Source: Octopus sinensis
Lineage: Eukaryota
Assembly: GCF_006345805.1 (NCBI RefSeq)
Contig: NC_043001.1
Location: 75,206,001-75,270,000 of the forward strand
DNA: 64,000 nt
Reading direction: 5' to 3'
The position numbers were made by a program, and so were the translations under genes. This document shows, one piece after another, positions 3,621 through 60,970 of this stretch; the stretch's first letter is position 1; each line of letters opens with the position of its first letter. The notes under the pieces were generated by a model. That model worked only from the letters and a program-made list of their open reading frames with translations. It had not been told where the DNA came from and did no database searches.

Positions 3621-3756
3621 ATATATCCCATTGATCGGCAAGCGACAATAGCATCGTTCCGTGTCCAAGATTTACCACAAATTCCACCCCATTTATTATC
3701 ATGGAAGATTTCAACAACGCCATGATGTGTAGCAGCATTGCGAAAGCGAACATTTT
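3621..3756 (-). CDS. SRCR gene exon 15: domain 8 N-half, NVRFRNAATHHGVVEIFHDNKWGGICGKSWTRNDAIVACRSMGY
   Basis: gcttcAG acceptor, GTAAGT donor; 136 nt; the partner C-half exon was not found in the window. Confidence 0.95.
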
Positions 3757-3875
3757 CTGAAGCAGAAAAGAAAGATGCACAAGGAAATTTTTTTTACTTG
3801 AAGTTTGAAACCAAAAATATATTATAATATATATTATCAAAATATAAAAAAATGCATTGTAAAAAATTAACATAT

Positions 3876-4290
3876 ACGCGCAGGCATGGCTGTGGGGTTA
3901 AGAAGCTCACTTTGCAGGCACGTGGTTCCGGGTTCAATACCACCGCGTGGCAGCTTCAACATGCATCTTCTACTAATACCTAGTGAGTGACTTTCGTAAA
4001 CAGACATTGTGTGGAAACCCATTGTATGTCTGCGTGTATACATACATACATACATACATACATACATACATACATACATACATACATATATGTATATATA
4101 TATGTGTACATGTGTGTGTGTCCCTACCTACTGCTTGGTGTAGATTTGTTGGCTTGTTCCACAAAAGAAGCCGATAGAATAAAAAACAGACTTAAAAATA
4201 CGAACTGGAGTCGATTCTTTCGACTAACCCTTCAAGGTGGTGCCCCAGCATGGCCACAATCCACTGATCAAAACAAATAAAAAATCACTT
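3876..4290 (+). mobile_element. SINE family A copy (diverged) with internal (ACAT)n
   Basis: gcgcaggcatggctgtggggttaag head; family tail tcaaggtggtgccccagcatggcc. Confidence 0.75.
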
Positions 4291-4611
4291 ATAATAATGA
4301 TTCTAATTCATTTCCACAGAAAATTCTAAATCATTGAATTAATTGGAGCGTATTCTTTAATAGAAAAACACGATTAAAATAGAGAGAATAAGAACACGTC
4401 TCTGTTGCCGCTCGAACTGTTAAAAATAACAACCAGTGCCCCTCATATTACATTTTGTTGACTTGAAAAGTAAGGGATACACTGATAATTTAGTCTGAAT
4501 TAAGTTTTGCTCATTTATTAATTCACTGTTGACGTGATACACATCTCTTTCCAAAATTTGGTCAAAATCTCGTGAAGTCAGTATTTGTTTCACATTAGTG
4601 TTTCGTATTAG

Positions 4612-4935
4612 ATAACTAGCACTCAGTCGGTTACGACGAGGGTTCCAGTTAATCCGAGCAACGGAACAATCTGTTCGTGAAATTCACGTGCAAGTAGCTG
4701 ATCACTCCACAGACACGTGTTTCCTTAACGTAGTTCTCAGGGAGATTCAGCGTGATAGAAAATGTGACAAGGTTGGCCCTTTGAAATGCAAGTATTACTC
4801 ATTTTTGCCAGCTGAGTGGACTGGAGCAACAACAAATAAAGTGTCTTACTCAAGTATGCAATACGTCACTTGTAATTGGACTCACGACCTTACGTTCGTG
4901 AGCCAAATACACTAATCACAAAGCTATGCGCCTTC
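4612..4935 (-). mobile_element. tRNA-headed SINE with CORE-like central segment (a related copy lies at ~52278-52420, +)
   Basis: Minus strand reads head..ttgagtaagacacttt..ttgctccagtccactcagctggcaaaaatgagta, shared with the 52.3-kb copy. Confidence 0.65.
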
Positions 4936-57654: not shown

Positions 57655-59620
57655 CCCACACACAACATCCACATTCAACAACAATGAAAAGACTAGAGCT
57701 GGAAAAACTTCATCTGCAGACTAACGTGAAAACCTCCATTGAAAATCAAAGAGCTGTGGAGGAACAATGGGTAATCAAAAACATCAAACAGAACCCAAAA
57801 GTGTTCTATTCTTATGCAAATAAGCATAGAACCACTGTCTCACCTATTGGGCCATTGATTGATGATAACGGCATTCCCCAACACGATGCTAAAGAAATGG
57901 CAGAAATACTGCAGAAACAATATTGCTCTGTCTTCAGTGTTCCCACTGATATTGACGTGAGGGAAACGAACGAAGTTGACTCCCAACACAAAATCGCAGA
58001 CATAACCTTCACTGCCACCGACATCGTTGCAGCAATAAATGAGGTCAAACATTACTCTGCTGTAGGCCCTGATAGATTTCCCGCTAGTCTCCTGAAGGAA
58101 TGTAGATATCAACTTGCAGTCCCTCTGACCAACCTCTGGAGAAATTCGTTAGACGCAGGTTATATACCGAAACAGTTTCTATCCCAGTCGGTCATCCCGG
58201 TTTTCAAACAGGGAAACAGATCCCTCGCAGTCAACTATCGCCCAATCTCACTCACCTCCCACTCACCTCCCACATCATTAAAGTGTTTGAAAGAGTGTTA
58301 AGATCAAGGATAGCTGACTTCCTGGAGACCCACAAACTCCTAAATTCTAACACAGCTCTAACACCACATTGAAGATGTACTCAAAGCCTTGGGAACAGGT
58401 TCGAACTCTGACGTCATATATCTTGATTTCAGTAAAGCGTTTGACAGGGTAGACCATAACATCCTACTCTCAAAATTGGCAAATGTTGGAATCCGTGGAA
58501 AAGTTCTACACTGGATTAAGTATTTCCTGGCGAATAGAACACAACATGTTGTAGTTGATGGAGTCCCAGCAAAAGTCACCAGCGGTGTTCCCCAGGGAAC
58601 TGTTTTGGGTCCGCTACTCTTCATAATTTACGTAAACGACCTTTCCAGTGTCGTACATCACTGCAAAGTGAAAATATTCGCTGATGACACTAAGCTCCAG
58701 CAAATCGTCAATGAAGAAGCAGACCGAACTCAACTCCAGTCTGATCTATATGGGCAGACAGAAACAAAATGCAACTGAATGAGGGAAAATTTGAGCTGAT
58801 GCATTTTGGAAGAAATTCCTCACTAAAACAACCATACTCTCTTCCTTCAGGGGAACCGCTCACAGCCTCTAACAATATCAGAGACCTGGGTGTAATTGTT
58901 GATGACGATCTCAGTTGGAGTGCACACATCAACAAGAAGGTCGATATAGCTCGTAGGATGAGTTCCTGGATCTTAAGAACTTTCCAATCCTAGAACAAGG
59001 TGTCATCATACCACTTTTTTCCTCCTTTGTACGGCCACACCTTGAATACTGCTGCCCACTGTGGTCTCCTCACACAAGATAAAACATCTCCAGAATTGAG
59101 TCACCCCAGAGGGCACTCACTAAACAAATTGAAGGCATGGCTGCTCTCGATTATTGGGATCGCCTTAAAGCCTTGAAACTTTATTCCCTCCAGCGTCGCC
59201 GTGAGCGGTACATCATTTGTACGATGTGGAAAATATACCGCCAACTTTGCCCAAACGACCTAAACATAAGCTTCAAGGCTCATCCAAGACTTGGACCACG
59301 GGCTATACGTCCCCTGCCAAATTCAAGATCACAACATACATGTACACTGCAACATAATTTCTTTTCCTCAACAGGCCCTGCCCTATTTAACATTGTCCCG
59401 AGGGAGATCAAAGAGGAAAAGGATCCCATCAACTTTAAACAGAGTCTGGATAGATTCTTTCAAAGAATACCAGATAAGCCACCCATAATTGGATACAACT
59501 CACCCAACAAGAACTCACTACTTGAACAAAACTTGACTTAAACAGGATTCGAATAATCCTATCAGGTGGTGCTTTAAGTTAGACATGGCCTGGACCAATC
59601 TCTGGTCGAAACATATCTAA
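57655..59620 (+). mobile_element. 5'-truncated, frameshifted CR1-clade LINE (RT)
   Basis: NYRPISLTS, YLDFSKAFDRVDH, SGVPQGTVLGPLLF, IFADDTKL, RDLGVI, RPHLEYC, LYSLQRRRER; tail (tctaagttta)2. Confidence 0.93.
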
Positions 59621-60139
59621 GTTTATCTAAGTTTATATATATACATATATATATATGTATATATACATATAAATATATATATAAACATACATATATATAA
59701 AAATTAGGAAGATAAAATTATTTTGAACAGAATAATACTGAACAGTATATATAAAGGACAAGATCCTTTTAAGAACAGAAAAATTAGCCGGCAAATATTT
59801 CTGCTCATAAAAGGATTTTATCATTTATATATACGTGTTGAAAAACATTTATCTTTCTCCTTGTTCTACAATACATTTCAACGCTTTAAAAACAAACTTA
59901 CGTTTGTTTGTATATGATGGAACACACACACACACACACACACACACACACACACACACACACACACACACACACACACACACAAACATACACACACAGA
60001 CACAGACACACACACACACACACACACACACACACACAAACACACACACACACGTTATCTTTACTTTGTTATCTCCCCTACCTTCCTTCACGTGCGTGAC
60101 CCTTCTGTCCGAGTCTGACGCCATGATAGATCGTTAGCC

Positions 60140-60300
60140 ACTACACACATCTTTTTCTCTCCTTGTTTTTTCTGTGTCCCTTTCTGTAGAAGAGCGTAAG
60201 CTCGAAACGTAAAAGACTTTTTCTATTGCTATGTTTCGAGCCTACGCTCTTCAACAGAAAGGAACACAAAAATAAACAGAGAGAAAATACAAAAAAAGGT
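60140..60300. repeat. Inverted repeat of a hammerhead-like, Penelope pLTR-type motif
   Basis: ctgtagaagagcgtaagctcgaaac on + and ctgttgaagagcgtaggctcgaaac on -. Confidence 0.6.
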
Positions 60301-60919
60301 TTCCTGGCTGGCGATCAATATATATATATATGATCTGAAGATCCAATATACTAGACCGCTGGTTTTTAAATTGATATTAATCAAATTAATATTCAATTTC
60401 TCACTCTTATTATTTAAATATATATATATATATATATATATATATGTATTCCTCCAGTTCACCGTCGTAGATATATATCGATCCTATAACGCTGAAATCC
60501 GAACACGATAAACCGTTACATGTAAAGGTTTATTTTTTTGTAACTGTAGCAACTCTGCTACTTCTCCGCCTAGGAATACAGTATAAGTAAATCCAGATAC
60601 TCAGCATTTGACGACATAACAGTACCAAATAAGTTTTTTTTCTGCATTTTTTGTTGGCTTGTGGCAGGATATGATTAAAAGTCTGCAAGCCACCACACTA
60701 ATCAATAACTGTATCGATTACTCAATCGATAAAGTGTTCTCAAATGTAGCTAAAACTACAGCTACGTCACCGGTTATTTTGCTGTCAACTATCATTACCA
60801 GCAACAGATGTTCTGGTGGCAAAATAGAACACAAATTTGGAATACTAAACAAGACCTTTATGGAATTCGTCAGAGCTCTAACTCTTGTTACTTTGTTTAA
60901 ATATAAATTTACAACTTAC

Positions 60920-60970
60920 AAACTGATGAAACATCATATGAGCTCACAAGAAAGATGACAGCCACCAAAT
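60920..60970 (-). CDS. SRCR gene exon 0 (first found): likely C-terminal half of a signal peptide, xLVAVIFLVSSYDVSSV
   Basis: Strong acceptor ttttcttatatttctttcactAG and donor GTAAGT; 51 nt; only the phase-1/phase-1 reading is open; hydrophobic; joins in frame to 56821 (VSSVSLPQK). Confidence 0.7.

Follow-up and report, generated by a model that had tools for sequence, protein, structure and literature searches.

SRCR domains of group B are held together by the disulfides C1-C4, C2-C7, C3-C8 and C5-C6 (PMC3100851), and those of group A are defined by six cysteines, C1 and C4 of group B being absent (PMC3100851, PMC10855680). A survey of 29 species found every invertebrate to possess group A domains only, with 20 SRCR genes and 70 domains in Octopus bimaculoides, 77 genes and 322 domains in Crassostrea gigas, and 357 genes and 1194 domains in the sea urchin (PMC10855680 supplement). 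In vertebrates, the tandem arrays of DMBT1/SALSA/gp-340 and CD163 belong to group B. Here we analysed 64,000 nucleotides of Octopus sinensis contig NC_043001.1 (assembly GCF_006345805.1, positions 75,206,001–75,270,000 of the forward strand), hereafter called the window. Its minus strand carries 13 exons encoding directly abutting SRCR domains of the group A type. We consider it probable that these exons belong to one protein-coding gene for an exported protein, and that both ends of this gene lie beyond the window.

Exon plan and cysteine pattern of the SRCR array

The SRCR pieces were located by a motif scan followed by iterative hidden Markov model (HMM) searches across all six frames of the window, which is AT-rich (35.6% G+C) and rich in microsatellites; the minus strand was the sole location of SRCR-coding pieces. 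The 13 SRCR exons extend from position 56821 down to 3621 and lie, once joined, in one frame free of stops. All 26 of their splice dinucleotides are intact and canonical (AG/GT), a pyrimidine tract precedes the acceptor AG of each exon, and the donors are of the GTAAG, GTAAT or GTATG type. In the 5′ to 3′ order of the gene the exons measure 136, 170, 133, 164, 133, 170, 124, 167, 136, 170, 121, 155 and 136 nt, and the intron phases alternate strictly, introns inside domains being of phase 2 and those separating domains of phase 1. These 1915 nt contain neither a stop nor a frameshift; at the minus-strand stop frequency of 0.055, the chance of 654 stop-free codons is about 1e-16. The spliced peptide of 637 residues matched the Pfam SRCR profile PF00530 in seven stretches (E = 1.3e-130, 427 bits, cut-off 26.1). 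Because the joined frame is open and matches this profile, the exon array is real, far beyond chance.

The exons fall into two alternating classes. N-half exons encode about 43 residues with two cysteines, follow the pattern ...GRAEVF..WGTVCDD.W....VFCR.LGY, run from phase 1 to phase 2 and end in ...LGY. C-half exons encode about 47–56 residues with four cysteines and run from phase 2 to phase 1. Individual exons were scored with HMMs for the two half-domains, trained on about 940 SRCR domains from other animals. Domain 1 is encoded on the minus strand, as are all that follow, by an N-half exon at 56686–56821 (136 nt, phase 1 in and 2 out, E = 1e-18) and a C-half exon at 52923–53092 (170 nt, phase 2 in and 1 out, E = 1.2e-19). 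Domain 2 is composed of 52706–52838 (133 nt, E = 7.8e-11), in which the cysteine C2 is replaced by serine, and 47592–47755 (164 nt, E = 2.5e-7), in which C7 is lost. In domain 3 the N-half exon (44871–45003, 133 nt, E = 9.6e-17) carries an acidic CDD motif, and the C-half exon (42657–42826, 170 nt, E = 1.2e-22) carries LDD, HNC and NED, which complete a cation site described below. Domain 4 spans 40678–40801 (124 nt, E = 2.3e-14) and 39807–39973 (167 nt, E = 2.6e-14); the intron after the latter, 15.5 kb long, is full of transposable elements. Domain 5 is formed by 24145–24280 (136 nt, E = 2.1e-13) and, beyond a 9.8-kb intron carrying the reverse transcriptase of a long interspersed nuclear element (LINE), 14217–14386 (170 nt, E = 1.1e-12). 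The N-half exon of domain 6 (9315–9435, 121 nt, E = 4.8e-9) has lysine in place of C2 and an extra cysteine four residues before C3; its C-half exon (6380–6534, 155 nt, E = 9.1e-5) has lost C7 and has an extra cysteine near the exon start. Domain 7 is represented by its N-half exon at 3621–3756 (136 nt, E = 2.7e-14), the C-half partner of which is not in the window.

The array within the window thus comprises exactly seven N-half and six C-half exons, or six complete SRCR domains and the N-half of a seventh. The count of 13 was agreed by three independent searches: HMMs of the array's own exons, tblastn with 120 multi-SRCR proteins against the window (E ≤ 10), and the half-domain HMMs of other animals. 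The last recovered the 13 exons at E = 1e-18 to 9e-5, with the next best match at E ≥ 0.13; neither tblastn nor these broad HMMs revealed a further SRCR exon in the window. Two additional candidates, at 22517–22567 and 31505–31546, were rejected as weak matches due to chance or to retroelement sequence.

An earlier inspection of this stretch, the sequence-only reading, had proposed 16 exons joined in frame by GT-AG splicing in strict alternation of phases 1 and 2, and at least eight tandem SRCR domains. The stop-free joining and the alternation were reproduced for the 13 SRCR exons, and the PF00530 comparison that it had suggested gave the seven stretches reported above. Its numbers were too high; the exons come to 14 when a 51-nt candidate leader exon is counted with the 13, and the domains to six and a half. 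Both of its end coordinates are right: the last N-half exon has its donor at 3621, and the 51-nt exon its acceptor at 60970.

The cysteine pattern places the array in group A. C1 and C4 are missing in all seven domains, the full set of six group A cysteines is present in domains 1, 3, 4 and 5, and the half of domain 7 contains C2 and C3. The eight cysteines and single exon per domain of group B were not found; as in vertebrate group A domains, two exons encode each domain, with a phase-2 intron after ...LGY in every case. The sequence-only reading had recognised six-cysteine group A domains each built from two exons, which the absence of C1 and C4 and the phase-2 splits bear out. It had also opposed two-exon group A domains to one-exon group B domains, a rule that holds for vertebrates. 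Sea urchin group A domains are encoded by single exons and sponge domains by three (PMC10855680), and the number of exons per domain is therefore not a universal marker of the group.

The cysteines of the conserved SRCR disulfides (C2-C7, C3-C8 and C5-C6) are retained, with variants in domains 2 and 6 that recur in nature. Each of these two domains is devoid of both C2 and C7 and thereby lacks precisely one complete disulfide. A census covering 933 domains of 120 homologues counted 27 joint losses of C2 and C7 versus 15 single losses, and two domains of Ostrea edulis share the joint loss. This census indicates that paired C2/C7 loss is the behaviour of folded, selected domains and not of decay. 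The two cysteines gained by domain 6 are positioned four residues before C3 and seven after it (..NECSVICRMLGNTC..), and they might form a replacement disulfide.

Pairwise identity among the domains of the array is only 21–48%, and the array is therefore old and not the product of recent amplification. Domain 3 matches solved structures of CD163, MARCO, SCARA5, neurotrypsin, LOXL2 and DMBT1. Among chains with a single SRCR domain the best match was MARCO (2oy3, 106.7 bits), followed in order by SCARA5, neurotrypsin, LOXL2, SR-A and then DMBT1; multi-domain CD163 chains exceeded MARCO in total score.

The domains directly abut, with inter-domain linkers of 0 to −2 residues. A scan of the inter-domain introns for hidden spacer exons of the kind seen in Argonauta (below), in the form of open phase 1-1 exons with decent splice scores, yielded only low-complexity artefacts and no Pro/Ser/Thr-rich exon. 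The sequence-only reading was thus correct in describing domains that abut without Ser/Thr/Pro-rich spacers. The shortest of these introns, between domains 1 and 2 (52839–52922, minus strand, 84 nt), is open in frame, and a single stop-to-stop open reading frame (ORF) at 52681–53181 (167 codons) spans the C-half exon of domain 1 and the N-half exon of domain 2. Retention of this intron would add 28 residues (RKYCLTYLSYTQLNKYKVSDYFIILFPPE-like) without a stop.

Relatives and their gene structures

The spliced peptide was searched against a set of 5.8 billion protein sequences, including proteins of O. sinensis, and the best 120 of its 1220 SRCR matches were listed. Overall identity to the SRCR proteins matched was only about 30%. 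The best identities for individual domains were 57% (domain 1, Argonauta hians) and 37% (domain 2, Acanthosepion pharaonis), and no database protein among the matches listed was more than 57% identical to any domain. A full-length orthologue of at least 60% identity, which would rank first, is absent among the best 120 of the 1220 matches. With domains 5–7 as the query, 131 word-sharing candidates included one weak match only. These results suggest that at least domains 5–7, and probably the whole gene, are absent from public protein sets, and the gene seems to be unannotated. A short partial model of domains 1–4 may be present in the databases beyond the best 120 matches.

The closest relatives by score are proteins composed entirely of SRCR domains. 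Spacer-less arrays of 7–10 six-cysteine domains, often with linkers of 0–8 residues, occur in Littorina, Saccostrea, Ostrea, Styela, Acanthaster and sea urchin. Some relatives have a transmembrane tail, among them one from Saccostrea, and the vertebrate CD163/DMBT1-like relatives carry eight-cysteine domains.

Two annotated molluscan relatives were mapped exactly onto their own loci. The gene from the gastropod Littorina saxatilis consists of a signal exon and nine pairs of N-half and C-half exons. Like the O. sinensis gene, it encodes abutting six-cysteine domains, each from two exons split after ...LGY, with phases 2 and 1 and no spacer exons. It differs in that its domains, about 30% identical overall to those of the window gene, are far more uniform and all have six cysteines, and its signal exon ends in phase 0; the window gene, by comparison, contains two variant domains of the four-plus-two-cysteine type and has much longer introns. 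The DMBT1-like gene of the octopod A. hians shares the half-exon split and the phases (its N-half exons end in ..GY) and the six-cysteine domains, and it provides the 57% match to domain 1. Unlike the window gene, it separates all neighbouring domains by a Pro/Thr/Ser-rich phase 1-1 spacer exon of 51–81 nt, so that its linkers are 19–33 residues long. Two further features were noted at this A. hians locus (BAAFZT010000118.1, 1–1444 and 20090–23313). A second SRCR gene is located directly upstream of the DMBT1-like gene, so that the two form a tandem pair. In addition, the annotated model breaks one N-half exon into two parts that are separated by 3 kb and cannot be joined by canonical GT-AG splicing, which is probably an annotation or assembly fault.

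Among vertebrate proteins, DMBT1/SALSA/gp-340 and CD163 resemble the window gene in having a tandem SRCR array, and multivalent binding is likely for both; in addition, the acidic cation cluster of SALSA SRCR8 is kept in domains 1 and 3. They differ in their group B domains, which have eight cysteines, C1 and C4 among them, and a single exon each. DMBT1 has SID spacers of 20–24 residues, CUB domains and a ZP domain (PMC3100851). DMBT1/SALSA orthologues are identified by the Ser/Thr/Pro-rich SID spacers and by a C-terminal CUB-SRCR-CUB-ZP module. The spacers are absent from the window gene, and no Pfam match to CUB or ZP domains of the DMBT1 type was obtained in the minus-strand frames of positions 1–3620. 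MARCO, SR-AI, SCARA5 and Mac-2BP share with the array a group A six-cysteine domain encoded by two exons, and the GRAEV motif is common to the array and the bacteria-binding region of MARCO (PMC3100851). Each of these proteins has a single SRCR domain compared with seven or more in the window gene. In MARCO, SR-AI and SCARA5 this domain forms the C-terminal end of a trimeric, collagenous receptor, whereas no collagen repeat was seen in the window gene. The LOXL2-4 type, in which four SRCR domains accompany a lysyl oxidase, also does not fit, as the array has at least 6.5 domains and no lysyl oxidase match was found downstream within the window. Sea urchin arrays, two of which were among the relatives compared, are likewise long, spacer-poor and of group A, although in the expanded clusters examined there one exon encodes a whole domain, and the family is hugely expanded, with 357 genes (PMC10855680); the octopus family, with 20 genes, is small.

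Architecture, exon plan and cysteine class of the window gene are the ordinary molluscan norm. The sequence-only reading had presented a long group A array as a contrast with the vertebrate arrays, but such arrays are ordinary for invertebrates, and Littorina has an identical exon plan. Nor does the term "lineage-expanded" suit the family, given the 20 genes and 70 domains of O. bimaculoides against the far larger oyster and sea urchin repertoires cited above. The only unusual point of the gene is its apparent absence from public protein sets.

Cation site and possible function

Residues of SALSA/DMBT1 SRCR8 were numbered on what we take to be the sequence of this DMBT1 repeat, a placement consistent with every residue number of PMC7043408. 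In SRCR8, cation site 2 is formed by D1019, D1020 and E1086, and site 3 by D1020, D1058, D1059 and N1081; binding is abolished when either D1019 or D1020 is mutated, and MARCO, CD6 and CD163 employ the same surface (PMC7043408). The corresponding positions in the array are the two after C2, those four and three residues before C5, the one before C7 and the fourth after C7. Domain 3 has D, D, D, D, N and E at these positions, identical to SALSA SRCR8 in all six. Domain 1 (D, D, D, E, D and E) is identical at four and conservatively substituted at two, and in domains 2, 4, 5, 6 and 7 the positions are mostly changed and the site is lost. Domains 1 and 3 are also acidic, with isoelectric points (pI) of 5.1 and 4.8, and domains 5–7 are basic (pI 8.6–9.1). 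The peptide contains eight N-x-S/T sequons, which fit a secretory-pathway protein.

Based on these features, the protein would be exported and would bind or agglutinate its targets multivalently. The likely ligand-binding modules are domains 1 and 3, whose binding is predicted to be cation-dependent, with Ca2+/Mg2+ bridging to anionic ligands as in SALSA/DMBT1, MARCO, CD6 and CD163. Domains 2 and 4–7, which do not have the cation cluster, may act as scaffold or engage other partners, and the basic domains 5–7 in particular are probably scaffold or binders of something else. A secreted or type-I binding protein, as the sequence-only reading had proposed, is a reasonable class, and relatives of both kinds exist; the signal peptide that it had also named is unproven. 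Among cephalopods, a DMBT1-like protein is abundant in the skin mucus of Octopus vulgaris (PMC11431876), and a DMBT1-like transcript is expressed in the white body of squid (PMC4361686).

A more far-reaching interpretation is that this is an octopod-specific, fast-evolving gene missed by all annotations, in which the acidic domains 1 and 3 are coupled to a basic, cysteine-rewired set, domains 5–7; this set, devoid of recognisable close relatives, would form a new subtype of SRCR domain with a ligand specificity of its own. We put this forward tentatively and regard it as rather doubtful. If it were true, domains 5–7 could have a role, for example, in skin-mucus or haemocyte recognition, and domain 6 could contain a new disulfide. 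The gene, if expressed, would add at least seven SRCR domains to the octopus repertoire, about one-tenth of the 70 counted in O. bimaculoides. It would also provide a natural test case, with SRCR domains that keep the cation site and domains that have lost it side by side in one polypeptide, and it suggests that cephalopod annotation still misses homology-poor, long-intron genes with half-domain exons.

Gene ends, introns and competing readings

At the 5′ side, a candidate leader exon is located at 60920–60970 (minus strand, 51 nt, phase 1 in and phase 1 out). Its translation, LVAVIFLVSSYDVSSV, features a hydrophobic LVAVIFLV core followed by SSYDVSSV and contains no ATG. The acceptor reads ttctttcactag/ATTT and the donor GTTT/gtaagt, and the exon joins the first exon of domain 1 in frame. 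The donor scores poorly with a small cephalopod splice matrix; the matrices derive from 18–31 sites only, are noisy and were used as a coarse filter. No homology supports this exon, and no convincing ATG or signal-bearing first exon was found in 56822–64000, where two scans gave only microsatellite-derived hydrophobic ORFs. The sequence-only reading had assigned a signal peptide to the gene. The 51-nt exon is indeed spliceable and hydrophobic, and to take it as the body of a signal peptide is a plausible guess, but it offers no ATG, and no convincing start exon was found upstream of it in the window. The first SRCR exon and the internal ones share the same phase-1 acceptor, and the array may therefore just as well extend beyond the window in the 5′ direction with further SRCR domains.

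At the 3′ side, searches of the three minus-strand frames of positions 1–3620 gave no Pfam match to the C-half of domain 7 or to other domains. Because this C-half is absent from the downstream 3.6 kb, the gene continues past the window at its 3′ end. Scans of the window for tRNA genes and Rfam families returned no matches.

Several points weigh against a single, expressed gene for an exported SRCR protein. A start codon, a proven signal peptide and a C-terminus are all missing from the window, and the gene model was derived from genomic sequence, so that the joining of all 13 exons in one transcript and the expression of that transcript are inferred. The canonical ligand site is lost in five of seven domains, a pattern compatible with relaxed constraint no less than with specialisation. 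No close protein is present in the set searched, as would be expected of a silent gene or of a pseudogene call by annotators and not just of an oversight. Finally, the gap between domains 4 and 5 is far longer than the other inter-domain introns and could be the boundary of two genes.

The alternative that survives best concerns the nature of the protein, in which the SRCR array may be the accessory stalk of a larger mosaic, with the defining domain (a protease, a lysyl oxidase, CUB/ZP domains or a transmembrane tail) encoded outside the window. The gene leaves the window at its 3′ end in the middle of domain 7 and possibly continues in the 5′ direction as well, its first SRCR exon having an internal-type phase-1 acceptor; invertebrate SRCR domains are combined with many other modules (PMC10855680), and the Saccostrea relative mentioned above has a transmembrane tail. 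Set against this, the closest relatives by score are all-SRCR proteins, the downstream 3.6 kb contain no other Pfam domain, and proteins of the LOXL type have four SRCR domains, not seven or more. We consider a mosaic protein possible but do not favour it.

The length of the two longest introns bears on a second alternative. The gap from the C-half exon of domain 4 to the N-half exon of domain 5 measures 15,526 nt, compared with 84–4781 nt for the other inter-domain introns, and the internal intron of domain 5 measures 9.8 kb. Remnants of three non-LTR (long terminal repeat) retroelements with RVT_1 ORFs lie in introns, on the plus strand and hence antisense to the SRCR gene, at 16411–18209, 31205–32215 and 57684–59541. 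The first of these, within the domain 5 intron, includes a 485-residue reverse-transcriptase ORF (16411–17868, plus strand, Pfam RVT_1) that is 94% identical to O. sinensis LOC115215385 and 72–73% identical to two other O. sinensis proteins. This identity points to the genome of Octopus or a very close relative, and the cephalopod origin guessed in the sequence-only reading is right. Intronic retroelement remnants account for the very long introns, the two longest of which have been inflated by such insertions, and for a strong positive AT skew at 16–20 kb and 28–36 kb.

It could nevertheless be argued that the exons belong to two adjacent SRCR genes, one with domains 1–4 that ends just after 39807 and one with domains 5–7 and more that starts within the 15.5-kb gap. 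If the donor at 39807 is left unused, a stop follows two codons on (...ISCSPSN*), and many relatives end right after their last SRCR domain. Domains 5–7 also differ from domains 1–4 in being basic, in having lost the cation site and in having no word-level relatives, and tandem SRCR genes are common, as in the Argonauta pair and in the clusters of PMC10855680. The length of the gap, however, is explained by a reverse-transcriptase element together with tandem repeats, and the 9.8-kb intron inside domain 5 demonstrates that introns inflated by transposable elements occur in the same transcription unit. Moreover, intron phases match across the gap (phase 1 out, phase 1 in), a scan of the gap revealed no credible ATG or signal exon, and in AT-rich introns chance alone would be expected to place a stop soon after a donor. 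In our view two separate genes are unlikely.

Least probable, and likewise unlikely in our view, is an SRCR pseudogene array that is unexpressed or was inactivated recently, with its exons still open: the missing close protein match despite the O. sinensis proteins in the database, the loss of ligand-site residues in most domains and the start codon not found in the window would suit it, but 637 SRCR codons without stop or frameshift and with all splice sites canonical do not, disulfide partners have been lost in pairs that leave no unpaired cysteine, as in working SRCR domains elsewhere, and domains only 21–48% identical point to an old array long kept open.

The introns of the window gene contain further repeats. 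Just downstream of the C-half exon of domain 4, a 151-residue ORF at 38602–39057 (minus strand, sense) carries a YVDD-type reverse-transcriptase motif and gave no Pfam match at E ≤ 0.01. In the region 27200–35200, a unit of about 480 bp is tandemly duplicated at 29043–29966, with related copies near 27459, 28488 and 34053; long (AAT)n/(TAA)n microsatellites border each copy, and the unit looks like a dispersed short repeat family. Other intronic tandem repeats were identified at 22082–22279 (42 bp, 4.7 copies), 50142–50909 (318 bp, AT-rich, 2.4 copies) and 54325–54712 (184 bp, 2.1 copies). Near the upstream end of the window, the segment 61837–62590 contains a (TGG)n/(CCA)n array (61953–62216, 88 copies) that generates long Val-, Thr- or His-rich ORFs on both strands; these ORFs are spurious and do not represent genes.

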